Assembly (NCBI RefSeq): GCF_020745735.1
Contig: NC_083408.1
Location: 10,788,484 to 10,852,483, forward strand
DNA length: 64,000 nucleotides
Direction of reading: 5' to 3'
From: Hemiscyllium ocellatum
Lineage: Eukaryota
Of the stretch, positions 1,720 to 56,558 are shown one piece after another. The notes under the pieces were generated by a model. The model made no database searches. It saw only the letters and a program-made list of their open reading frames with translations, and was not told where the DNA came from. A program made the position numbers and the translations under genes. Numbering within the stretch: position 1 is the stretch's first letter; each line of letters starts with the position of its first letter.

Positions 1720-1912
1720 TACGTCAATGGGCCAATGAATAGCAGGTGGAGTGTGGGTAAGTGTGAGATACTGCATTTTGATATGGCAAAACTGGTCGGG
1801 AATGTACAGTTAATAGTAACGCTCTGGGAAGTGTTCCCGAAATGAGATACCAGGAGGTGTAGGTTCACATTTCCGTGAACGTTCAGTCGAGTGGACAGGA
1901 TGCTGAAGGGTG
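1720..1912 (+). mobile_element. CR1 LINE fragment interrupted by a PLE
   Basis: WANE*QVECG*CEILHFDM-like decayed CR1 RT thumb sequence. Confidence 0.55.
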
Positions 1913-2770
1913 CTGAGTCCAGAGTGAGATGCTGGAACAGCAGAGCAAGTCAGGAGCATCTGAGTAGGAGGCGAAACAATGTTTCAGGCGTCAGCACTTC
2001 ATCAGGAATGAGACTTGTGTGCTGGGGGCTCAAAGATAACTAGGCGAAGTGGGTTCAGGGGGAATGTAGCTGAGAAAGCGCTGGGTGGTTGAAGGTGAGA
2101 GAGAAGGTGATCTGTCGGAGAGGAGTCTGGAGCAGATAGATGGGAACAGTGATGGAAATGAAGGAGATTGTTTCTGAGTTAAAGACATGGGACCGGGATA
2201 ATATGAGTGGTGGGCAAATGAGGAAACTGCTGAAATCCAATTCATCCAGTGTGGGTTCAGGGTCCCAAGGCCGAATATAAGGCCCTTCTCCTCCAGGCGT
2301 CAGGTGGAATCACTTTGGGGGTGAAGGACCTCCAGAACATCCATGTCCATCATCGAGTGGGAGGAGGAGTTGAAGGCTTCAGCCATGGTGTGGTTGGGTA
2401 TGTGGGCCTGGATGTTCCAGATAGGTTCTCTGAATCGATCTGCAAGAAGGTGTCCTGCCTCCCCGATGCAGTTGATGATATTGGTAGAGGTACAAGTGAA
2501 TTCCGGCTGGATGTGCTAGAATCCCTTGGGGCCTTGAACAAAGGTGAGGGGAGTGGTGTGGGCGCAGGTCGTGTACTTCCCAAGAGGCAGGGAAAGGTGC
2601 CCGAAGTGCGGTGTGGGCTAGTGGGGAGTGCGGACATGACGAGGGAGTCAAGCAGACTTTTCAAGAACTCTAGTAGGAGTGGGGATGGAAATATATCTTT
2701 GGTGGTGGGATTCATTTGGAGTTGAAAGAAGTGGCGGAGTATGCTTTCTCGTATGTAGAGGTTGTTGGGT
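1913..2770 (-). mobile_element. Penelope-like element (Neptune-type), 3' part with GIY-YIG region and terminal hammerhead motif, decayed
   Basis: ORF 2350-2715(-) NPTTKDIFPSPLL...DSLV...GTFPC is homologous to the 53714-56558 element. The terminus carries a decayed ATTCCTGATGA...GAAAC motif on the minus strand (~1975-2009). Confidence 0.75.
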
Positions 2771-2779
2771 GAGGAGTGA

Positions 2780-4870
2780 GTTGCTTAAGAAGACGTAATT
2801 ATTGGGTCAGTGTTGACATCACGAGCGGAGGTGGTGTTTGTGACTGTGTTAACAGAGGCAGAGGAGGCGTCATGAGTAGGAAGGCATCATTACTCGTGGG
2901 TAGCCAGCTGCTGACATCGCCAGCTGCGCGTGACGTCAACGACAGAGACGACCAGTCACCACTGCCCTGCTAGTTGTCTCTATCGTTGATGTCACTTCAA
3001 CTGCCAGTTACATCATCCGCCAAGCACACAGTAATCATTGCCTTTTCTAACAGGACATCACTTCCACCCCTGTAATGACAGCCATAAACACAACTTCCAC
3101 CACGTTTGTGAACGTCACTTCCCTTGGGAACGTCACGACCGACGCTATAACCGACTCCAGTTCCAAACTCCCATCACATCTGGAAGTCCAGCCCCACTGC
3201 AATTCCAAGATCCCAACCCTTCTGTGTCATCACCATTCCCCCAGGCCTCCCCCTCACTGAGGACGAATGTTTGGTCTTCAGTAAAGGCCTCACATTAATC
3301 CCATTACGGTCCCAGCTAAATGAGTTTCTACCACCACCTCTGCCTCCGCGCCTATTGTTTTAACCAAGACACCCGCTCACCCACCGACAATCACTTCACC
3401 CGTCTCCGACCCACCACATCCACCTGTACATCCCGTGCTGGCCTGCTACCCACTCTTGACCTCTTCACTTACAACTGTTGGTGTGACATTGACCGCCTCA
3501 ACGTGTCAAACTACCTCACCCACTCCAACATCTCGCTATCACAACGTGCCATCTTCCAGTCACTCTGCTCCAACCCCCACCCCACCATCAAACGTGCAAA
3601 CAAGGGAGTGCAATAGCAGTCTGGCACACTGACCTGGACACTCCTGAAGCTTGGCGCCAGTTCTCATATCCTTCCTCCTCCTGTCTCCATCATCACAACT
3701 TCACCTCACATCCCTTACCCCATCCACAACCTCATCACCTCTGGGGATTTCCCATAAGCACCCTCCAAAATCATTGTTCATGATTCTCGCACCATCCGAT
3801 TCTACTTTATACCAAAGATTGACAAATTTGACTGACCGGTGGACCCATTGTCTCAGCCTGCGAAAGTGTACCACCTAACTCGTCTCTTCAGTTCATCTCC
3901 TACAGTTACACCAGTTCTCTGCTACCTCGATGACCTTATCGGTACTGCCTCTTCATCCCACAAGGAGGGTGAATAGCTCATCAACTTTGCCACGACATTC
4001 GACCCCGACGTCAAATTTACCTGGACCTTCATGGACACCTCCCCCCGCCCCTTCCTGGACCTGTCCATCACCGTCTCTGGCAATGAATATCCATAGGCAT
4101 ATACTACAAGAACACCGACTCCCAAAGCTACCAAGACTTCATCTCCTCCCTGCTTATCACCTGTTATAAATGACATTCCTTATTCCTAATTCATTCGGCT
4201 CCACTGCATCCATTCCCGGGAGTGTCAATTCTACCTCAGAATGTCCAGTTAGCCTCATTATTCCACGTTCACATCTTCCCTTCCCACTTGGTTTACCATG
4301 GCCTCCAGTGCATCACTTCCACTTCGCGCACCACTGCCCTTGAAACCTACCCCTCACAGCGCAACAAAGAACAGAACTCACTAGTTCACACCTTCCACTC
4401 TACCAAACCTCGCTAACAATGCATTATCCTCTGCGACTTCCGCAACTCCAAACCACCAAAGATATATTTTTCTCCCTACACCTATCAGCGTTGCAAAAAG
4501 ACCTTTGACGACTCACTCTTCAAGTCCACCACCCCCACCAGCCACAACTCAAACCTGTCACACTTCTCTGCACTGAAGGAAGTGCAAGACCTGTGCTCAC
4601 ACCGCTTGCCTCCCCTCCATCCAAGGCCCCACGGGATCTATCCACATCCATCAGAAATCCACCTCTACCTCTACCAATGTCATCCACTGGTTTCTTTGCA
4701 CACGGTGTGGTCTCCGCTCCATCAGGAAGACAGCACACATTCTTGAGAATCGTTTCAAATAATATTTATGGGACACCCTCACCCACCCACCCCACAGTCG
4801 CGTGACTGAAGCCTTCAAATGCCCCTCCCACTCCATCTGAGATTTCCGAGTCCTGTGCCTCGTCCTTTAC
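2780..4870 (+). mobile_element. Penelope-like element (Neptune-type), decayed RT and GIY-YIG, opposite orientation to 1913-2770
   Basis: PTIKRANKG (normally IKPADKGG) at ~3580, RFYFIPKID at ~3800, FTWT...PFLDLSI at ~4015, and a GIY-YIG-like region at ~4560-4860. Confidence 0.7.
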
Positions 4871-16520: not shown

Positions 16521-17434
16521 AGCAATAAGTGCAGTGAATGGTATGCTGTACTTCGCTGTAAAATTATTCAAGTATATGAATAAAGTCACCTTCCTGCAGT
16601 CGTAGAGCCTTGCTGAGAGAATATTTGAGGCAGTCTCTACAGTTTTGCTCTACTCTGTAAGGAATGATCTCCTTACCATAGACACAGATGATAGTACCAT
16701 GAGGAGAGAATGAAGAAGCAGAGTGTTTATCTTGTAGAGCTGTGACATAAAAAGAAATATTTGCGGTGATCCTTGAGGACTGGCAGCGATAACTTATTTC
16801 CAAAAGCGACATAGCAAAGGTGAGAAAGTGCAGACTTTACCCAGGATTGAATATTTTGATTAATTATCATGTGTACCTCAGTACAGGGAAAGACACTTTA
16901 TTTGTGAGCAGCAGAGGCAGGTCATTGTAAGCATGGACAGACAGATAATAGCTTGAAAATAGACTTGGACAGCATAAAGTATGTAAGTTACAATGCACAG
17001 GACACGCACTCGACAACATCAACATGAATAACATCAGCATTGTTTGGATTTAGAGAGTTCATTCATCAGTCTAACACGGCGTTCTTAATAGCTGATCTGC
17101 TTGAATTAGCTCTCCCTATGTTAATGTGAGTTTGACTTCTGAATCTGTACTGAATGCCATGTTGTTCGCAATTCCCAACAGCAGCCAAAGGACCTTACTT
17201 CAGAAACTGGTAGCTATTCCCAGCATCTTCTGACCTCTGCAGAGAACTGCTGTCTGTCTTCTCGGAGATGGAAGATGACTTCTGGAGACTTCACACAAAA
17301 CATTTTGCTTCCACCCTCAAACCTGGAAAACCACATTAAATTCCCACGTGTGTACCATGAGCAATTGAGCCACGAGGAACAGTGTGTGTCAGCATCTGCT
17401 CCACTTGTTTATCATGTTCGATCGACAGTTAGAC

Positions 17435-17560
17435 GAAAGTGAGGACTGCAGATGCTTGAGATCAGAGTAGAGAGTGTGGTGCTGGAAAAGCCCAGTAGGT
17501 CAGGCAGCATCCAAGAAACAAGAGAATTGACAATTCGGGCATAAACCATTCATCAGGAAT
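17435..17560 (-). mobile_element. Solo Neptune-type PLE 3' terminus with decayed hammerhead motif
   Basis: Same terminal sequence as the fold-back elements (AAAGTGAGGACTGCAGATGC...CATCAGGAAT). The minus strand reads ATTCCTGATGAATGGTTTATGCCCGAATTGTC. Confidence 0.8.
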
Positions 17561-17740
17561 CAGCATCAAATACCTCGTTCTGTGCCTATGGAAGTGACTT
17601 GATGGGCTGAATGGCGTCCTCCTGTTCTTGTGTGAGTGACTTAAGGGAGTCAATGGCTTCTTCCTCGTCCTATTGAACAGGATCAAGGGCCTCATTGGGT
17701 TACCCCTCGTTCCGGTATAACAGTTGGATGTGCTGACTAA

Positions 17741-27274: not shown

Positions 27275-27484
27275 ATAGGCAGGAGTGTGGAACAACACAG
27301 CAGACCAGGCAATATCAGGCGGTGTAAAAGTCGATGTTTCAAGTGTAACACTACTTCAGAACTTCTGAAGAAGGGTTACACCTTAAAAGCTCCCTACCTC
27401 ATGATGCTGCCTGCCTTTCTGTGGTCTTCCAGCTTCCAGCCTGACTATTTTGGATACAATCATTTCTCGTTTTTTTGTCTCTCT
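27275..27484. mobile_element. Fold-back PLE-terminus element, family B, old
   Basis: Central palindrome GTGTAACACTACTTCAGAA-C-TTCTGAAGAAGGGTTACAC with diverged outer arms. CAGCTTCCC is duplicated at 27259-27267 and 27487-27495. Confidence 0.65.
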
Positions 27485-28454
27485 CCCAGCTTCCCGTACT
27501 CGACATATGTGTACTCCGTGTTTCAAGGTAAATGCTGCGATATGGTCTGTGCAGTGCTTCGGTCTGGACAGATTGCCGATTTTATTGACCAGCACAATGG
27601 GCGAATCGGCACAGTGTTGCACTCTGGGTCGTATGAGAAATACACGAGCCCGGTCTAGACACTGTTCTACTTGGAACATGTCTCTCCTCTGGAGTTATGG
27701 TGATTGTCTGTGGTGGATTATGAATATGCCAAAATTAACTATTTCAGCTTATCTGGCAAGGCCTTTAGTTCTCATTCTTGTGATTGGACCCTCCATCTCT
27801 CACTCCATTAATTTTGCAGCATGAGCATGCACAGTACATTATACCCACTCTGCTGTCAGGATCCATGGCCTCTTCATCCAGAAGCAGTCAGATATTCCCA
27901 TCGTCTTCTGGTATCCATCGAGAAATGAATGATAGCCTTTCAGATAAACGCCAGCCCCTTTGTACAATTATCAAAACACCCTCTTCCTCATGAACTCCCA
28001 TCACTAGGCAATCACATCAAAATATCCCGTGTTCAATGAGAGGAGTGGGCCCACTTGGAACAAGAGGGAACAGAACAAGGGAAGCAACACTTTCGATGTC
28101 TGTACGGGTCTGAGTGAATTTTCCAGTACTCAGTATTTCATTTAGCTTTTAATCTCTCTCGATTTTTGCAATGTAGAGACATTTTTCCTTGCTGAAAATA
28201 ATCACAGGTACAGAGCTACCCACGTTATATTCTATTTCCCAAGTTTCTGTCTATTGCTTATCCATTTATAATTTCAGTACCTCCACTTGATAACTTCAGT
28301 TCCTAACTATCCTAGTGCCATTCTAAATCTAGTTCGTACATGTTCGTTCCATTTCTGGAAATAGGTGATATTATTTGTAAATAGTTGAGGCCAAAGCACT
28401 GGTCACTGTGTCACTGCAGTATTAAACTGTGTTAAACTAGTAGAGAATGTTATA

Positions 28455-28671
28455 GCTGAAAATGTGTTGCTGGTCAAAGCACAGCAGGCCAGGCAGCATC
28501 TCAGGAATAGAGAATTCGACGTTTCGAGCATAAGCCCTTATTCCTGATGAAGGGCTTATGCTGGAAACGTCGAATTCTCTATTCCTGAGATGCTGCCTGG
28601 CCTGCTGTGCTTTGACCAGCAACACATTTTCAGCTGTGATCTCCAGCATCTGCAGACCTCATTTTTTACTC
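28455..28671. mobile_element. Fold-back PLE-terminus element, family A, with 13-bp TSD
   Basis: ~86-bp inverted arms (28454-28539 and 28550-28635) with one mismatch, a 10-nt loop and a 36-bp extra tail on the right. The TSD AGAGAATGTTATA is at 28442-28454 and 28672-28684. Confidence 0.93.
28540..28575 (+). ncRNA. Minimal type I hammerhead ribozyme motif (one stem II mismatch)
   Basis: ATTC-CTGATGA-AGGGCTTATGCTG-GAAA-CGT-C-GAAT, with stem I ATTC/GAAT. Confidence 0.7.
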
Positions 28672-29969
28672 AGAGAATGTTATATACCTAATGTATCCAT
28701 GCTTTTGGCTCAGTAACCTGTTCATCCCGTATACCTGTGCAGCGTTTTTGATAGGCTGCATATTCCCTTCCATTTCCTATGTAACATGCATGAAAGATTA
28801 AAAGCTCCAATTCCTGCATAACAGCCTCGAATGGCTAAATGGATCCTGTTGATGTTAAAACAAAACCACTTGATTGGCTGAATAGCTTGCTTCAGTGTCG
28901 GTGACGTTGTGAATGGTGCTGAACATTTATTTCCAATAAATGATCAGCCCACTTCTCCCTTTATGATGGAGAGAAGGCCATTGATGCTGCAGGGTCTGAT
29001 AGCCCGCAGTCCCCCATGGATGCCCAGTTTCCATTTGCTCGATTCTTTACAAATATGTCTAAATTCACAGGAAATCGTGCCAGATAAAACAATAGGCAGT
29101 ATTTTCAATATGTGGCCGAGACTTGTCCTCCACAAGGACTATGTGTTGGCTCCTCCTTCAGATACACTTAAGGACACATCTATCAGTGACACGGAGTGTG
29201 GTAAGAATGTTTCGCTCTTGTCAGTTCCTCTATCACTTCCGATAGTATGGCTGCCGTGTATTTGAGGCCTCTCCATGCTCAGTCAGTGAAGAGGATGTGA
29301 AGACACTGTTAAGGATGGACATTGAAGTGCCACGGCCAGAGTTCGTTCTGTGACCTTGTCACCTTCAGTGCTGCCCCTGGTTTCTTTTCCGCATCAAGGG
29401 GAACTGAGTTATCACTGTGGGGGTTGTGGAGGGCAGTTGATGTCCACCATCAGGCGATTTCCTTGACTGTATTTGACGTGTTGCCATGGGAACTCCTTGT
29501 TTCTGGAATTAATGCTGTGGAATTGCAGGGTAACTCATTCCCTGACTAAGTCCCCACCCCTGGTGGGTATGTCCTTCCGGTGGGACAGGACATATCCCAG
29601 GATTGGAATTGGGTTTTATGAAATATGTCCCATGATGTTTCTTTCTGTGAGAATCACGGTATCAGACGATTTTCTGACCGGGTCAATGTGAAGAATATAG
29701 GTGACAATGGATCAAGAAATAATGGGTAAAAAAAAACTGATTGAAAGGCACTCTATCTTGATGGGTTTTATATTCTGACTAAAGATTGAGGAATGGATAT
29801 GATAGTCAGAGAGTCATTTGACAGAGATACCACTTTTAGCAAATGAACGTCCAGCATATTTTATATTTAGGTATATTCTACAAAACTAAAGGTTTGACTT
29901 AGGATAGCCCTCCCAATAAAAGGACGACATCTGTATGATTGTAAAGTCGGACCTTACATCAAATGTCAA

Positions 29970-38599: not shown

Positions 38600-40620
38600 A
38601 GTGCTGCCCTGATTTGACTTACAAAAATGGTATACTTCCCGTTTGACTAAAACAAACTTCATCTGTCACTCCTCGGCCCTTCAGCCTATTTGATCACTGT
38701 CCCGCTGTACTCTGCGTTAACCAGTTTCACTGACCACTGTGCCACCAATTTGGTTTTATCTGCAAGCTGTCCAGCAATTCGAACCATATTCACATTGAAA
38801 TCATTTATATAAACGGCAAAGTCAATTGGATCCTTGTGCACATATTGGGAAAAGGCCTTCAATAAAAATACATATCTCAACCATTACCACCGTCTCTTTC
38901 CTGAGAGCCAATTACTGCCCCACCTGCCCAGATCTCCCTGGAATACAGATTATCTAACCTTGCTAACCTGTTAACTATAAGGAACCTGTTCGAGTGCCTT
39001 ACTGAAGTCATGTCGTCACTCTCTCCTGCTGTACCTCCATCAATTTTCTTCATCACTTTTTCAAACCAAGCAATCAAGTTGGTGAGAAATGATTTCCCAT
39101 GTTCAAAGCAATGTTGACTATCTCTAATCAGTACTTGCCTGTCCAAATACAGTATACCCTCTCCTTGAGAAACCTTCCCCCACAACAAATTACTAATGAC
39201 TGGCGTCAGGATCTGCGTTTTATAATTTACTAACTTTTGCTTCCCACCTTTCTTATCTAAAGGCACATCATTCGCCACCCTTCAGTGTTCCAGCAATTGA
39301 CCTGGACAATCCATGCTGTGATATCTCATCAATGTATCTGTCACTTTCCCCAGCTTCTCACAGCATTCCAGGTACATTGATCACTTCACAGAGAATTATC
39401 TATCTTTATGAATTTTAAGAATTCCAGTTTCTTCCCTTCTGTAATATGGACACATTTCAAGATATCATTGTTTATTTCCTCAAGTTCACTACTGCCCAGA
39501 TCCTTCTTTGTATTAAATACAGGTGTGAAATATTCACTTAGCATGTCACCCATGGCCTGTATTTCCACAAATAGGTGGCCTTGCTGATCTTCAAAACCCT
39601 ATTCTCTCCATAATTACTCTTTTGACGTTCATATGTTTTCAGAAGCACATTGGATTCTCCCTTACACTGTTTGCTGAAGATTAGGCATGTCTGCATTTTG
39701 CCATCCTGATTTCTCTCTTGAATATTATACCATTGCCCTTGATTCAGTTGATTCCTGCTGTCTATAGCTACTCCTTACTTTTCTTGAGCAGAACCACAAT
39801 TTGGCTCGGCAACCAGCAGTCCCCACGCCTATCAGCCCTGACCTCCTCGTTAACAGGAACATGCTGCCTCTAGACACTGAAATCTCATTTGTGAAGGTGC
39901 CTCACTTTCTGCCACTGGCTTCGCCCAGAGACATGATAAACTGCAGATGATGGAATCCAAAATAGACAGCCAAGAGGCTGGAAGAACACAGCAAGCGTGA
40001 CAGTTTCATGAGCTGGAGAAGTCAACATTTCGGGATTGATCCTTTTTCAGGACTGTGAGAAGGCGGCGGGTGGGGGGGGGGGGGGGAGCTGCAGGTAAAC
40101 GAAGTAAATGAGCAATGTGGTGTAGTTGGGAGAGGCCAAGAGAGACACTTTATTTTCTTGCTAACCGAGTTCATCCCACTGCAAAGTTTCTTAAAACGAT
40201 GCGCACTTTGAAGATGTTCTCTGCCTCCTCAGAACTGAGCCCGTCGCTCTGCTTTCCGCTGCAACCTGTAACCAACCGGATTCAATCCTCACATTGACCA
40301 AACAGGTCGTGCCCTCTACTTGTCTCCACCTGTCACCATATCACAACCTTGCCTCTGCCTCCCCCTACACTCACCTCGACTTCAATAAAGGGGTTCGACC
40401 CGAAATGTCGATTTCTCCAACTATTTGAAGTTGCCTGGCTTGCTGCGATATTCCAGATTCCCGACAGTGCTTCGCTTCAAGCCTCCTAGCTGTCAACCAG
40501 GTTCTACCAAATACCTTTTCAAAGTGGTTGCTTCAAACGTTCAAAATTGGCCATATTCAATTTAGAACTTTAGGCTCTACATTAGGAATATTCTTCTCCA
40601 TGATTATATTTAAACTAATA
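38600..40620 (-). mobile_element. CR1 LINE, decayed (endonuclease-linker-RT), interrupted by a fold-back element
   Basis: ORF 38877-39278 (ANDVPL.KKGGKQ...IRDSQHCFEHGKSFLTNLI) and 39386-39568 (LSEYFTPVF). Confidence 0.8.
39925..40464. mobile_element. Fold-back PLE-terminus element, family B, old
   Basis: Left arm CTGGAAGAACACAGCAAGC...GTCAACATTTCGGG and right arm CCCGAAATGTCGATTTCTCCA...GCTTGCTGCGATATTCCAG. The degenerate TSD is CACTGGCTTCGC / CAGTGCTTCGC. Confidence 0.7.
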
Positions 40621-43299: not shown

Positions 43300-43952
43300 T
43301 GACACTTGCACGAATAAATTAAATATCAATCTGCCTGGTATGTGGAAGCGTATCAGGATTGCAGTAACAAATTGGAAGTTTCATTATGGGATCTCTGGTT
43401 GTTAAATTCGTATTATCAGGATTTTTCTAGATGGAGATATCATTGGATCTCTTTATTTGGAAATAAAAATCGAATGTCAAGGGAGAATGTGAATAATACG
43501 CAGGGGAAAGACACGATGAAATATAATTATAATTCATGACTTCCCTGGATATATTCTCACTATACCGTACACATTTTCCACGAGGGAAGGAAATCAGCCA
43601 GCAGATAATCCCTGAGTTCCTCGTGTTTATTTTCCATTTCATAGCAGGAATCACGATAAATGATTTCCTGTGGGTATGAAGCATAGCTTGAATATCCCGG
43701 CTTGTGAGAAACGTGGCGAAATCAGCGAATGGAGCAAAACAACTGATCAGCCTGAATGAAATCTGTGAATTTATTAACTTCACGCTGACCTGAGAACCCG
43801 CAAATCCAGTGCGAGAAATGGAAAGGAAGTGTTTTATTAACAATGGCATTATCGGATGGCAAAAAATGAGGTCTGCAGATGCTGGAGATCACAGCTGAAA
43901 ATGTGTTGCTGGTTAAAGCACAGCAGGTTAGGCAGCATCCAAGGAATAGGAA

Positions 43953-43988
43953 ATTCGACGTTTCGGGCATAAGCCCTTCATCAGGAAT
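43953..43988 (-). ncRNA. Minimal type I hammerhead ribozyme motif, best-preserved copy
   Basis: Minus strand: ATTC-CTGATGA-A-GGGC-TTAT-GCCC-GAAA-CGT-C-GAAT. Stem I is 4 bp, stem II is 4 bp, stem III is the palindrome ACGT, and the cleavage triplet is GUC. Confidence 0.8.
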
Positions 43989-44325
43989 GAGGAGAGTGTG
44001 CCAAGCAGGCTAAAATAAAAGGTAGGGAGGAGGGACTTGGGGGAGGGGCGATGGAGATGTGATAGGTGGACGGAGGTCAAGGTGAGGGTGATAGGCCGGA
44101 GTGGGGTGGGGGCGGAGAGGTCAGGAAGAAGATTGCAGGTTAGGAGGGCGGTGCTGAGTTGAGGGAACCGACTGAGACAAGGTGGGGGGAGGGGAAATGA
44201 GTAAACTGGAGAAATCTGTCCATTTTCCTCACCTTGACCTCCTTCCACCTATCACATCTCCATCGCCCCTCCCCCTAGTCCCTCCTCCCTACCTTTTATC
44301 TTAGCCTGCTTGGCACACTCTCCTC

Positions 44326-44361
44326 ATTCCTGATGAAGGGCTTATGCCCGAAACGTCAAAT
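44326..44361 (+). ncRNA. Minimal hammerhead ribozyme motif (G>A change next to the cleavage site)
   Basis: ATTC-CTGATGA-AGGGCTTATGCCC-GAAA-CGT-C-AAAT. Confidence 0.7.
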
Positions 44362-44639
44362 TTCCTATTCCTTGGATGCTGCCTAACCTGCTGTGTTTTA
44401 ACCAGCCACACATTTTCAGCCATTATCGGATGGAGACATGGTGTGTCTGTGCATGTTGAATAACCAGAAGCAATAAGAGTGTGTTCAGAACGGAAGTGAA
44501 AGTTGCGGGTGACTGCAACTTTGTCTGCTTGTGCTCCTTACCCCATTGACAACCTGTGATATATTTTGAGTGAGGAAAGGTGGCAGTGTGTGTGTGTATT
44601 GTACAGACGTGTGTGTCGCTTACATCGTGATACGTGTTT

Positions 44640-46200
44640 GCCTCCCGTCCACAGCAACTTCTTTCCTGCTCCCACTCCTATAACCACGACGGAGTGAAAG
44701 TAACCAAAACTAGCAGATAGAACAATAAATGGAATAGTGTTGATAAATGACGAACAGACATTAAATAATAACGTAAAATTGGGATTGTACCCGTTCTGAT
44801 CAATATTGCAGACGTCCAGGTGCTGGAGTATTGCTTAAAAATGGAAAATGAAGTTTGTTAAATAATGCAGTATTGCAAAACTCTGCTGAGAATCACCGGA
44901 GCTACGAAATACATAGAATGCCAGTCTTTCATTTCAGGAGGCACAGAGGGAGACACTGAAAGACATTGTCACGCGAATTAATACCTGATTTTCCATCGTT
45001 TATTTAGTAGATATGCTGCTGGACAATTAAAGTATACAGTCTGAAACAGATTATCAGAGAATTAAAGCTGTAGGATGATGAAACTCAAATGGAATAAGTA
45101 CGGCTACAGAGGAAGACAACGAAGATGCAGTTAGATGGAGGAGCCATAATTGAAGTACTTGCGTTAACAATTAATCAATTAATTGAGAGAGAACAAGAAG
45201 ACACTTGAAATCGTCAACAAAATCAACCGTGTCATGCCTATGGGTTGTGGATGATCCGCCAGAAAATGCACAACTTGTATCAAACAACGAGTGAAGAGGT
45301 ATGTGATTGGGTCAGCTTTACTCAATTAGCACAATTGATTCGTTTGTAGAGGACATTAGATGATTGCACATCAGAGGTACTAAAGAAGGTCGATCTATCC
45401 AGTAGTCAGGCCATTTTCCCTGTAAAATACGCTCATTTTCACACGGTGAATGATGTGGTATCTAAAGAAATGACTTTCCCCATTACTACCTCTGAAGACG
45501 TAAATGTATATTGAATTAAATCACTCTATGGCGTCACTTGTTTTATAATGAAAAGACTACCATACATCTATACCGAATCTGACTAGGAAACCGAGATATG
45601 TGTGAATTTGGCCATACTGAAAGGAGCATGCTTGAAATCACCCAAGTCACCATATACTTTACTCACTCAAAATATCAGTGGAAGAGGACAGTATTGCGTA
45701 CCTTTGAATGAAATGACATACGGACATGGAAGCTTAAATTATTCTATTCCATTTCCTGATTTTTCTTCGCTGCCTGCAAGTCATTTACTATTGGCCAAGT
45801 TCCGATGATGCACATCAAGCAAGGAAACTGGGAAGTCCTTCCGTTAGCTGGTACGCTTAGTGATAAACATATAGATATTAAAGAAGTGGACACAGTCCCT
45901 ATTCCACATTTAAGTGAATATTTCAGGACAGAAGATAAGTAGTACAATTGCACCACGAGCTACAAAGAAACCGAAGTTCTTGAAGAAGACAGAGGATGAG
46001 AAATGCAGAAATGAATGTGGAGGGAGTAAGCATGGAACTGTGGAATACACATTACTATAAGTCACTGGATCAGGACAGTGTGCCATACAGTCGCAGGAGT
46101 TCAGGGTGATGACTCGAATGTCACATCAACAATATAGATTTAACAGAAAAGTATGGAACCTGATAAAGGAGAAACTAAAAATGCGAAAAGGACTCAGTCC
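44640..46200 (+). pseudogene. Decayed env/class I fusion-glycoprotein-like ORF (retroelement-derived, possibly lokiretrovirus-like)
   Basis: Pieced translation: NGIVLIND..IVPVLINIADV..YC; basic RRHRGR then LKDIVTRINT*FSIVYLVD; heptad-like IIEVLALTINQLIERE; CHAYGLWMIRQKMHNL..DWVS; GRGQYCV; WIRTVCHTVAGVQ near the end. There are many stops and frameshifts. Confidence 0.45.
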
Positions 46201-51959: not shown

Positions 51960-53280
51960 TCACCAGGGTGAGCCATTCCATGTGGTGTATTTGGATTTTA
52001 GGAAATCGTTTGTCAGTGTCCCTCGTAAGTGATTATTCTGCAAGATTAAAAGGCATGTGATTGGAGTAAGTGTATTGACATAGATAGAAAATAGGTTGAC
52101 TGAGAGGAAATAAACTGGAGGAATTAATGGGTTTGTTGAATGTGGGAACAAAATGTTTGCTGATGATACCACTGTGGTAAGATGGTGATTAGTAATGTGG
52201 ATGCAGAGGTCATTCAGTAGAATCTGGACAAGTAGTGCAATTGTGTAAATACATAGCAGATGCAGTATTAATTATACAATGTGAGTTAATGCACTTTGGA
52301 AGCAAAAACAAAAACAAAAATGCAGACTATGATCTCAACGGCTGTAGGTTTCAATTGGGGAATGTGCAGGGGGACTGGGATCCCGTGCAGAAATCGTTGA
52401 ATGTCAGCATGCAGGTGCAGCAGATGGTACAGAAGGTAAAAAGTATGTTGGCTTTTAGCTGGAGATTTCGAGTCCTGGAGCCGGCTTATTTTGTTGCAGT
52501 TGGTTATTGGCAAGATAACATCCAGAATATTGTTTGAAGGTGTTTTTCACCGTGTCTCTCGCTTTCGAAGGAATGTCTTGAAATTTAGCAAGATTGATTT
52601 TGGGGTATGTGAGATAGATGCATACCCAGAGATTGACGAGGTTAGTGGTTTTATTTGCTGGAGTTCAGTCGAATGTGGAATGTGGAGGAAATCTCGTGAA
52701 GTCTAGTGCATTTCCATAGGACTAGATATGGTAGATGCAGGATGATGTTCCCTGTTATGTGCGTGTGCAGAACCAAGTGTCATATGTTGATGATACAGAC
52801 AGAATCATTTCGGACGATGATGAGCAAATTTTTTGTCATCCAGAAAGATTTGAGTATGTGTCAAAAATTGAGTCAAGAAATAGTAGTTGCCAAAGCATTG
52901 AATACATTCAAGTGATGGCTGGACATTACAATTGGAACAGTGGACGGCAAGATTTAAGGGGGACAAAGGAGGAACAGGCCACTGAGGTGGTGAGCAGGAG
53001 AAAGTGAGGACTGCAGATGCTGGACATCAGAGCTGAAAATGTGTTGCTGGAAAAGCGCAGCAGGTCAGGCAGCATTCAAGGAACAGGAGAATCCACGTTT
53101 CAGGCTTATGCCTGATACGTCGATTTTCCTGTTCCTTGGATGCTGCCTGACCTGCTGCGCTTTTCCAGCAACATATTTTCAGCACTGAGGTGGTTAATCA
53201 GCTATGGTCGTGATGAATGGCGGAGCAGGCTCGAAGAGCCGAATCATCTCTATCTGCTCCGATCGTCTCGGTTTCTGTGT
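51960..53280 (+). mobile_element. CR1 LINE, decayed; 3' UTR interrupted by a fold-back element
   Basis: VVYLDFRKSF, MFADDT and CELMHFGSKN motifs. The tail resumes at 53184. Confidence 0.75.
52994..53183. mobile_element. Fold-back PLE-terminus element, family A, folded at the ribozyme stem II loop
   Basis: Arms 53032-53105 and 53110-53183 around a TTAT loop, with the tail on the left only. The TSD ACTGAGGTGGT is at 52981-52991 and 53184-53194 (13 bp with one mismatch). Confidence 0.9.
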
Positions 53281-53713
53281 AAAATAGAGGAGAGGGAAAG
53301 AGCAGAGATAGTGCCAATACATCCAGAAAACTCACCATTATTTGATTCCTGACAACCTGGCTGGCATCCTCCACTCTTCATTGTATAAAATTAGGAGTAT
53401 CAAGAGACGGAAACCGTGACTGTATTGAATTGAAAATCCTGCTATTGCCAAAGGTTAAGAATTCAAGATAAACATGTACAATATTCCGGAATGGGGTAGA
53501 CAGATAGAAGGTTCGACGCTGATCAGTAAAGCTGTTGTAACTAATAAAGATGTCAAGTAATTCTTTCCAAATCTCAAGCACGTCTCGAAATAGTGCACTT
53601 GCAATCCGAAACATTGCGTCAAGAGGTCGAGGATTACCATTACTCTTCGATATAAACTTTCTGAGGATTACTGTAGAATACATCTGCATTGATTCGCCAT
53701 ATAAATGGCTATG

Positions 53714-56558
53714 CAAAAGTGAGAATGGCAGATGCTGGAAACTAGAATTTACATCAGAGTGGTGCTGGAAAGGCACAACACGTCAGGCAGCACTCGAGGC
53801 GCAGGAGCATCAATGTTTCAGGCAAAAGACCTCCAGCAGGAACTGAGGCAGGAATCCTCCATGGTGGAGGGATAAGTGGGTTGTGAGGGACTGGGGAGAA
53901 GTTAGCAAAGTGTACAACACGTGATTAGGCGTGGGGATGGAGGTAATAGTTCAGAGAGGAGGATGGGGAAGTAGCAAAGAGAACAGTAGATGAATTTGGC
54001 GTGGGGAAGTGGTGATTGGTCAGAGGGAAGGGTGGGGCGATATGTGGGAAGGGAGATTGGCAGGTTGGACAGGTCACGAGGACAATGCCGAGCTGGAAGT
54101 TTAGAACTGATGTACGGTGGGGGAAGGGGAATTGAAAAAAATGGTGAGGCCACATTAATGCCCTGGCGTTGATGTGTTCCGAGGCATAAGACGAGGCGTT
54201 CTTTCTCCTGGCGTCGGGTGGTGAAGTAGCGGTGGTGGATGAGGCCCAGGACCTGCATGTCCTCAGCAGAGTGGGAAGGGAAGTTCAAATGTTGGGCCAC
54301 GGGGCGTTGGGGTAGTTTGGTGTGGGTGTCCCGGAGATTCCCTGAAGCGCTTTGCGAGGTGATGTCCAGTCTCCCCAATGTGAAGAAACAGACACAATAA
54401 ATGACATTGGTGGATGTGCAGTTGAAACTTTGATGGACGTGGAAGGCTCCTTTGGGACCTTGGATGGATTTGAGGGAGGAGGTGTAGGCGCAGGTTTTGC
54501 AATTCCTGCGGTAGCAGGGGAGGTTGCTAGGATAGGAGCGTGGGTTTTTGGGGGGCGTGAACATTGCCAGGTAGTCATGGAGGGAACGGTATTTGTGGAA
54601 AGCCTAAAGAGGTGGGCAGGAAATATATCTCTGGTCGTGGGGTATGTTTGGAGGTGGCAGATATATCGTTGCATGACGTGGTTAATGCAATGTTTGGCAG
54701 GATGGAAATTGAGGACTGCGGAGGTCTGTACTTGTTACGGTTGGAAGGGTGGGGTTTGAGGACAGATTTGCGGGATGTGGATGAGATGCATTGGAGGGCA
54801 TCTTCAACAACGTGGAAAGGGAAATTGCGATCCCGAAAGATGGAGGCCACCTGCTGTGTTCTGTGGTGGAACGGGTCCCTCTACACCTCCACCTGCCTCG
54901 ACCAGTGCCTTCAAGCACTCCGTTGCTTCCTCTCCAGACGTCCCCAACAGTACCCTTCCACTGACACTCTCATTCGTTTGGCTGAACTGGTCCTCACCCT
55001 TAACATTTCCTCATTCTAATCCTCTCACTTCGTTCAGAACAAAGGGGTAGCCATGGGTTACCAATATGTGCCCCAGATATGTCAGTGTCTTTGTCGGTTA
55101 CGTCGGACAGTCCATCTTTCATAGTTACACCAGCACCAATCCCCACCTCTTCCACCGCTAAACTGATGACTGCAACGACGTCACCTCACGCTCCTGCGAG
55201 GAGTTTGAACAGTTCATCAACTTTGCCAATGCATTTAATCCAGACCTTCAATTCACCTGGACCATCTCTGACACCTCCATCTCCTTCCTGGACCTCACCA
55301 TCTCTATTAATGACGACTGAATTGAATCCGACATTTGTTTACAAATATACTGACTACAAAAGCTACCTGGATAACATCTCTTCCCACCGTACCTTCTGCA
55401 GGAATACCATCCCATATTCCAATTTCCTCCGCTGCCGCTCTATCTGCTTCCAGGAGGACCAGTTCCACCACAGGACATAGCAGCTGGCCTCCTTCTTTAG
55501 AGATCACAAATTCCCTTCCCACGTGGATGAAGATTCCCTCCAACGCATCTCATCCACATCTCGCACGTCTGCCGTCAAACCCCACCCCTCTAACCCCACA
55601 GTAACAAGGACAGAACCCACCTGGTCCTCACTTTCCACCCGAACAAACGTTGCATTAACGCAACATACGCCGACATTTCCCGCACTTCCAAACGGACCCC
55701 ACCATCGGAGGGATATTTTCCTCCCCTCCCCTTTCTGCTTTCCGTAAAAAAACCTTTCCCTCTGTTACTACATGGTCAGGTCCACTCCACCAAAACAACG
55801 CACCTCCTGTCCTGGCACCCTCCCCTGCCACCGCAGGAATAGCAAAACCAGCGCCCACAGTTCATCCCTCACCTCCAACCAAGGCCCTAAAAGAACCTTC
55901 CACATTTATCAAAGTTTTAGCAGCACATTCACCAATGTCAAATATTGTATCCGTTGCCCTCTCCATTGGGGAGATAGGACACCTCCTCGCAGGGCGCTTA
56001 CAAGATCATCTTCAGGACATCCTCACCAAACAACCCCACTGCCCCGTAGCACAACATGGCATCTTCCCCTCCCACTCTGCGAGGATGTGCCGGTCTTGGG
56101 ACTCCTCTACCCCTACCTGCTCACTACCCGACGCTTGGATGAAGAACGCCTCACTTTCAGCCTTGGAACACTTCAACCCCAGTGCATCAGTGTGCATTTC
56201 ATCAGTTTCTTCATTTCGCCTCCCCCCAACTTACTTCAGTTCCAACGTTCTGGCTTAGCACTGTCCACCTGAACTGTCCTACCTGCCAATCTCCCTTCCC
56301 ACCTACTGCTCCACCCTTACCTCAGACCTATCACCTCTATGCCCACTCCAATGAACGATTGTGCTCTTTGCTACGTTATTGCCAGCTCCTTCCCGTTTAT
56401 CTCTCCACCCTGCTGGCGTCTGCCACTATGCCTGATGAAGGTCTTTTGCCCAAAACCTCGATTACCCTGCTCCTCGGATGATGCCTGACTTGGTGTGCTT
56501 TTCCAGCACCACTCTGATGAAAACTCTGGTTTCAGGCACCTGCAATCCTCACCTTTGC
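53714..56558. mobile_element. Head-to-head pair of 5'-truncated Neptune-type PLE copies (minus 53714-~54872, plus ~54875-56558) inserted in a minus-strand CR1
   Basis: ORF 53902-54564(-) has CYRRNCKTC...FNCTSTNVIYC (Zn linker plus GIY-YIG). The plus copy has RT motifs LIRLAELVLT.N, GVAMG and SFLDL and the same GIY-YIG. Both outer ends are the hammerhead-bearing terminus. Confidence 0.88.

Follow-up and report, generated by a model that had tools for sequence, protein, structure and literature searches.

A hairpin-shaped insert in the Hemiscyllium ocellatum genome, apparently two 5′-truncated PLE end fragments joined head to head

Within the window analyzed here, a 64-kb stretch of Hemiscyllium ocellatum DNA, a hairpin-shaped insert of 587 bp occupies positions 43847-44433. 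Its features, from left to right, are as follows (PLE, Penelope-like element; TSD, target-site duplication).

43847-43859, strand not applicable: left copy of the TSD, an exact 13-bp direct repeat (CATTATCGGATGG) that adjoins the element
43860-43893, minus strand: tail of 34 nt, sense reading TGTGATCTCCAGCATCTGCAGACCTCATTTTTTG, present on the left arm only and missing from the right arm
43894-44218, minus strand (antisense on the plus strand): longer 5′-truncated PLE copy, containing the terminal unit with hammerhead, the 3′UTR and the last endonuclease codons
43953-43988, minus strand: left copy of the minimal hammerhead motif, with an intact helix I of 4 bp (AUUC/GAAU)
44219-44226, strand not applicable: junction filler of ~8 nt (CCATTTTC) that matches neither copy and at which the arm alignment breaks
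44227-44420, plus strand (sense): shorter 5′-truncated PLE copy of 194 nt, without tail, with the short end ...TTTTCAGC
44326-44361, plus strand: right copy of the minimal hammerhead motif (AUUC/AAAU), in which a G>A change at 44358 removes the first pair of helix I
44421-44433, strand not applicable: right copy of the TSD, the exact 13-mer CATTATCGGATGG, adjoining the element

A repeat search placed the inverted arms at 43887-44087 and 44227-44427 (201 nt, 96% identity, 139 nt in between). Trimmed to the element proper, they span 43894-44087 and 44227-44420 and are identical at 188 of 194 nt, the six mismatches being three transitions and three transversions. An earlier note on this DNA had described near-identical inverted arms of ~194 bp, an exact 13-bp TSD, a tail on one side and no ORF, and all of these were confirmed. 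The TSD surrounds the whole unit and abuts both element ends, the right arm's ...TTTTCAGC (44420) running directly into the 13-mer; the tail is present at 43860-43893 only; and no ORF of at least 120 aa lies within the element. Among 20,000 random placements in the window, 0.3% had an exact direct repeat of at least 11 nt within ±40 nt. Together with its tail, the longer copy measures 359 nt (43860-44218) and begins just past the EN domain; the start of the filler is marked by the consensus of related copies, which diverges from the target past 44218. Contigs of run X1, whose coded organism label is shared by most runs containing this stretch, match both outer junctions (43720-43884 and 44377-45000) with 0 differences, indicating that the insertion boundaries are no assembly artefact. 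No bridging contig was found for the inner fold junction among the contigs listed. An internal TSD was looked for inside the structure and none was found; the single 13-bp duplication brackets the whole.

Both arms can be traced to PLEs. A profile search with the terminal unit (nhmmer) gave 17 matches in the window, and the terminus that the earlier note had seen on RT/GIY-YIG copies was recovered at 1912-2014 (minus), 53714-53843 (minus) and 56427-56557 (plus), with E-values of 1e-13 to 2e-22. At 1912, 53714 and 56557, the unit adjoins decayed endonuclease ORFs, downstream of them and in the same orientation, which supports the proposal that both outer ends of the insert are PLE 3′ ends. The decayed ORFs upstream of these termini share the pattern C..C..C ... 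NVIYC.C ... IGE.G ... VAQH ... LGT..P.G.N. The ORF at 53902-54564 (minus) had 457 relatives by exhaustive HMMER search, and four long relatives (P0012, P0017, P0036, and P0046) carry Pfam RVT_1 followed by a C-terminal GIY-YIG domain, some of these matches falling below the Pfam curated cut-off; all four end in ...LGT..P.G.N. As judged from these sequence comparisons, the terminus corresponds to the 3′ end of a canonical EN+ element, part of the domain evidence lying under the Pfam cut-off, and the arms read as 3′ ends of a canonical PLE with RT plus a GIY-YIG at the C terminus. Pfam searches of 14 different decayed window ORFs returned nothing usable, a homologous-protein search with the EN ORF returned nothing, and an Atlas search gave weak GIY-YIG leads only (0.90).

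The 139-nt loop between the arms belongs to the same picture. Its reverse complement translates as ..DFSSLLISPPPTL.., similar to the ORF ends of the larger copies (56180-56272 and 53925-54100). Beyond 44218, related contigs carry on with AGTTCATCCCTTGTGGTTGGAGGGTTCC (26, 5, and 49 contigs in three runs), the reverse complement of which encodes GTLQPQGMN, the last conserved EN motif, found at the end of PLE EN domains. The loop is a continuation of the left copy and no separate part. Because it consists of ORF-end sequence and related copies run into GTLQPQGMN, the left copy is a 5′-truncated PLE, and its ORF-end and 3′UTR sequence indicates that its template was a PLE RNA with an ORF. The locus thus displays the 5′ truncation with an adjacent inverted 5′-truncated copy (359 nt, minus; 194 nt, plus) and the 30-40-bp tail, often at one end only, of PLE insertions. 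The earlier description of the insert as MITE-like in look but retro-derived is borne out by arms that are PLE 3′ ends and include the end of an ORF. A further decayed PLE 3′ portion lies at 1912-2800 (minus), with its terminal unit at 1912-2014; there, an ORF at 2350-2715 (minus) reading ..NPTTKDIFPSP..SGTFPC.. resembles, by eye, the stretch preceding the zinc-finger-like EN motif of the relatives.

Each arm contains a motif with the minimal hammerhead layout. The 28-nt sequence CTGATGAAGGGCTTATGCCCGAAACGTC is present at 44330-44357 (plus) and 43957-43984 (minus), with a 2-mismatch copy at 28544, and no occurrence is expected by chance (100 shuffles). The left motif is composed of CUGAUGA, a bulged A, stem II GGGC-UUAU-GCCC, GAAA, CG, and UC; both arms have the catalytic boxes and the cleavage triplet (CUGAUGA ... 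GAAA ... CGUC). In minimal hammerheads (min-HHRs), a nucleotide is left unpaired between A9 and G10.1, G10.1 pairs with C11.1, loop 3 is lacking and 15.2-16.2 is palindromic (Cervera and de la Pena, 2014; PMC4209133), and the corresponding structure is seen here (A / GGGC-UUAU-GCCC / GAAA-CG-UC). At the level of sequence, the motif agrees with every one of these criteria and with the published minimal PLE hammerhead, so that the claim of such a motif on each arm stands and the motif qualifies as a candidate ribozyme. With no loop 3 and a palindromic 15.2-16.2 (CG), its ACGU forms helix III between two molecules only. Rfam hammerhead families gave no match at the gathering score across the whole window or at E≤10 in the element, which, by our own reasoning, is to be expected of a motif without helix III; the sole low-E Rfam match was Hsp83_3_UTR, of low complexity and far under threshold. 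Among 11 decayed window copies, helix I and II positions were paired in 75% of cells vs. 73.5% in shuffles (21-49% in slid controls), with one two-sided pair change (AUUC/GAAU vs. AGUC/GACU). Since covariation in these copies does not exceed that of shuffles, structural support consists of the fit to the published descriptor.

Published min-HHRs cleave poorly and need dimers (PMC4209133), and that of Anolis needs the PLE protein (PMC11167929). The transcript of 43860-44420 is predicted to form a hairpin of -428 kcal/mol (z = -32.5), in which the sense and the antisense motif are paired with each other, an arrangement that disfavours ribozyme activity. The idea of a ribozyme on each strand is correct in that the motif lies on both strands, but it is overstated, since this is the automatic outcome of inversion and each transcript has one sense and one antisense motif. 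In the same way, a hairpin RNA is indeed predicted, but the two motifs that it contains would be mutually paired, which, according to the folding model, is the reverse of what min-HHR dimer action requires, namely two copies in sense. Hammerheads in a read-through transcript would be locked in a duplex of ~190 bp, and such an RNA is more likely to be a Dicer or piRNA substrate than an active ribozyme. Most likely, the hammerhead motifs came along as passengers with the terminal region of the PLE.

The target is one of six head-to-head pairs in the window, listed below.

53713-56558: arms of ~1.1-1.3 kb and ~79% identity, EN-bearing and old; no TSD found; tail-like sequence at both outer ends
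43847-44433 (target): junction 44218/44227; TSD of 13 bp; tail of 34 nt on the left
28442-28684: turn at ATTC before CTGATGA; TSD of 13 bp; tail of 37 nt on the right
52981-53194: turn in the stem II loop GCC-TTAT-GCC; TSD of 11 bp; tail of 40 nt on the left
27288-27434: another PLE family; turn at the 5′ edge of helix I; no TSD found
39940-40456: old, other PLE family; no TSD found

The pair at 28442-28684 has its TSD (AGAGAATGTTATA) at 28442-28454 and 28672-28684, arms that differ at 1 of 78 positions, and a 37-nt tail at 28635-28671 that is homologous to that of the target. In the pair at 52981-53194, the 11-bp TSD is ACTGAGGTGGT, and the 40-nt tail at 52992-53031 is again homologous to the target tail; because the turn lies within the stem II loop, neither arm has a CUGAUGA box. 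The turn at 27288-27434 reads ...CTTCAGAA, then C, then TTCTGAAG..., and helix I and stem II in this pair and in that at 39940-40456 are unlike those of the target (AGUC/GACU, GGAU/AUCC, GGGU/ACCC). The TSD search was negative at the three older fold-backs (27288-27434, 39940-40456, and 53713-56558), and the tail-like sequence at both ends of the last of these indicates that a one-sided tail is not obligatory. Arm identities from 98.7% down to ~79% suggest that the window fold-backs are separate events of different ages. The fold points that could be placed were all different: one lies ~1.1-1.3 kb in, another 99/230 nt upstream of ATTC, a third at ATTC itself, a fourth within the loop of stem II, and the last at helix I of another family. 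An identical fold point or junction was therefore not found in independent copies in the window, and the suggestion that the insert belongs to a self-propagating fold-back family is not supported.

Genome-wide evidence came from Logan contigs, whose depth is not copy number: ~46,000 contigs in organism A and ~44,000 in organism D match the element (43813-44439; runs X1, X10, X11, and X15) whereas organisms B and C have only ~1,200, and the PLE family of the target appears to have expanded unevenly across related species. Head-to-head junctions occur in at least 71 and at least 206 contigs, and the best-supported joints connect 43978-43989 with 44321-44335, that is, two copies starting at or near the ATTC/CTGATGA boundary. 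The preferred genomic junction lies 4 nt upstream of CUGAUGA, whereas the target folds elsewhere (44218/44227). The filler at the common junction varies by contig (A, T, TTT, GGAA, CTTTT, CCTGT, and others). A further 126 contigs match up to 43988 and then run into unrelated sequence (agreement 0.33); together with the joints at ATTC, they point to a sharp 5′ boundary of this family, which lies 4 nt upstream of the catalytic box. By the earlier note's own yardstick, the variation in fold points, along with the target's avoidance of the common ATTC junction, favours independent insertion by-products. Taken on its sequence, the insert is best described as two 5′-truncated PLE end fragments placed head to head, a known PLE by-product, and is probably not a new self-propagating ribozyme element. 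The search for an empty site recovered none: organisms B and C yielded the repeat only, without the flanks, and organism D yielded the flanks at ~92% identity with no bridging contig among those listed.

Inverted PLE insertions have been described before. An adjacent inverted 5′-truncated PLE copy with a tail at one end only was reported by Craig et al. (2021; PMC8557442, Fig. 2), and an inverted pLTR with an 8-10-bp TSD, a 31-bp tail and palindromes at inverted junctions by Arkhipova et al. (2013; PMC3846280), both papers documenting the one-sided PLE tail of 30-40 bp. As in these insertions (see also Evgen'ev and Arkhipova, 2005, as well as Arkhipova, 2006), the target has PLE 3′ outer ends, a truncated inverted partner, a one-sided 30-40-bp tail, a TSD around the unit and a hammerhead per terminal region. 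It differs in that both copies are cut to a few hundred nt, without ORF or direct pLTR, and its TSD is 13 bp vs. 8-10 bp in the rotifer examples. We conclude that the target represents, on a small scale, an insertion form already known. Also on record are dual min-HHRs that lie 100-700 bp from each other on opposite strands (Cervera and de la Pena, 2014). The target shares with metazoan PLE min-HHRs the CUGAUGA and GAAA boxes, the unpaired nucleotide between A9 and G10.1, the palindromic CG and a 4-bp helix I; its stem II is 4 bp vs. 7-8 bp in Schistosoma, and its right arm is short of one helix I pair. Non-LTR retrozymes (de la Pena et al., 2020; PMC7229834; Li et al., 2026, preprint, 10.64898/2026.07.22.740005) are, like the target, short, ORF-less, PLE-derived, and hammerhead-bearing. 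However, they are direct tandem repeats in which same-sense hammerheads excise a monomer that circularises, whereas the target motifs lie on opposite strands, in opposite sense, so that no monomer can be excised; assignment to the retrozymes was rejected.

The closest biochemical parallel is the PLE of the lizard Anolis, whose purified 'PAc' protein cleaves and extends both target strands and uses two internal RT start sites, the interval between them being the tail (Frangieh et al., 2024; PMC11167929). These two start sites match the two 3′ end points seen here, which are 34-40 nt apart and downstream of the hammerhead, although PAc is from a different clade and species. In vitro, neither start site showed a strand preference, whereas the three young fold-backs in the window each have one long and one short end. 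The earlier proposal that cDNA synthesis was primed at both nicks is compatible with these data. What the sequence shows is how the insert is built, exactly where it begins and ends, that both arms derive from a PLE, and that the longer copy is 5′-truncated; priming from both nicks is what we infer by analogy with the in vitro work on the lizard PLE.

We consider it somewhat probable that the whole 561-bp insert stems from a single integration event of a canonical PLE, with priming from both staggered nicks. The PLE endonuclease would nick the two target strands 13 bp apart, and each 3′-OH would prime reverse transcription on PLE RNA. One RT start at the distal internal site would give the arm with the 34-nt tail, and the other, at the proximal site, the arm ending ...TTTTCAGC. 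Both cDNAs would stop early, at 359 and 194 nt, their 3′ ends would be brought together head to head by end joining with ~8 filler bases, and fill-in of the stagger would create the TSD. This account is favoured because it explains the long and the short end without extra assumptions. The six arm differences could reflect two template RNAs or decay after insertion.

A rather less probable route to the same PLE by-product begins with one primed cDNA, the end of which folds back and primes itself, a process that Arkhipova et al. (2013) inferred from palindromes at inverted PLE junctions. A start at the distal site at one nick would yield plus strand 43860-44226, the 3′ end of which would fold back; copying from 44087 back to 43894 would yield plus strand 44227-44420 and stop before the still-occupied initiation region, and the end would lastly be joined to the second nick. 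The whole plus strand 43860-44420 can indeed be read as one continuous strand, and the exact turning point of the fold-back at 52981-53194 is the palindromic loop of stem II (GCC-TTAT-GCC), as would be expected of a hairpin-primed cDNA. At the target junction, however, an internal snap-back 139 nt away would have just 2 of 6 bases available for pairing, and the route requires the extra assumption that self-copying halts with 34-40 nt left to the cDNA 5′ end; what has been observed in vitro is a pair of discrete RT start sites (PMC11167929). Under self-priming as under priming from both nicks, the product lacks an ORF, and the insert was most likely dead on arrival.

Given the huge repetition of the terminal unit (~46,000 and ~44,000 contigs in organisms A and D) and the many contigs with head-to-head junctions (at least 71 and at least 206), one could also envisage a self-propagating non-autonomous fold-back family, in which the palindrome RNA is recognised in trans by PLE protein and re-inserted as a unit or regenerated. 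We regard this as very improbable. The target does not share the common fold point, its longer arm includes the end of an ORF and 3′UTR sequence, fold points differ among window copies wherever they can be placed, and the variable filler at the common junction is as expected of de novo joining each time; moreover, a hairpin RNA with a predicted -428 kcal/mol would be a poor RT template. PLEs are very dense in the window, with at least 14 termini in 64 kb, so that two independent insertions in opposite orientation at one spot, or a later inverted duplication, come to mind; the single exact 13-bp duplication around the whole, the lack of an internal TSD and the identical bracketed anatomy at 28442-28684 and 52981-53194 make such a history highly unlikely. 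Least credible of all are two readings, an artefact of assembly and a DNA-transposon MITE bounded by terminal inverted repeats. The likeness to a MITE is one of superficial shape only (inverted arms, TSD, no ORF), as the arms are PLE 3′ ends including an ORF end and the two ends are asymmetric by 34 nt; a fold-back DNA transposon with symmetric terminal inverted repeats reaching both ends was rejected on account of these 34 unpaired nt. An artefact is contradicted by the six differences between the arms and by independent contigs that reproduce both outer junctions exactly.

Going beyond priming from both nicks, it is conceivable, if doubtful, that the terminal unit (ATTCCTGATGA to the RT start site) is a SINE-like template, with the hammerhead acting as an RNA-dimerisation device for paired priming rather than as a cutter. 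A fold-back joined at ATTC would then have two units transcribed outwards from its centre; the RNAs would pair via the palindromic ACGU of the hammerhead, and a dimeric PLE protein would copy them from both nicks, regenerating the palindrome with a fresh junction each time. As to a possible ORF start within the unit, the open frame running through it showed no resemblance to the N-termini of distant full-length PLE proteins. A solo copy at 17432-17561 (minus) consists of the terminal unit only, from ATTCCTGATGA to the tail (~130 nt), and its sequence upstream of ATTC is unrelated. TCATTC fits the initiator consensus, with A+1 at 44326, the start of most genomic copies of the unit, and an AT-rich, TATA-like CTTTTAT(C/T)TTAG lies ~30 nt upstream of 44326 amid GC-rich sequence (44291-44329; mirror 43985-44023). 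PLE transcription may start at the TCATTC site. Scanning for sigma-70 promoters and terminators has no relevance in a eukaryote.

For a PLE-rich genome, the element itself is ordinary; its value is that it allows a poorly understood integration mechanism to be read from natural insertions. When a fold-back is small and young and its TSD is intact, a single locus preserves the stagger between the nicks (11-13 bp), the two RT start sites, which lie 34-40 nt from each other, and the way in which the cDNA ends were joined, by filler or by the palindrome of stem II. Surveying fold-backs across the genome could test whether the start sites are used independently on each strand, a question left open by the in vitro work, and could tell whether transcription starts at the sharp 5′ boundary found upstream of the hammerhead. 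In annotation, masking as fragments of PLEs is appropriate; such structures should not be called MITEs, hairpin RNA genes or ribozyme genes. At the left edge of the insert, an ORF of 140 aa (43427-43849, minus), without a Pfam match, has an ATG that overlaps the left TSD copy and is probably fortuitous.
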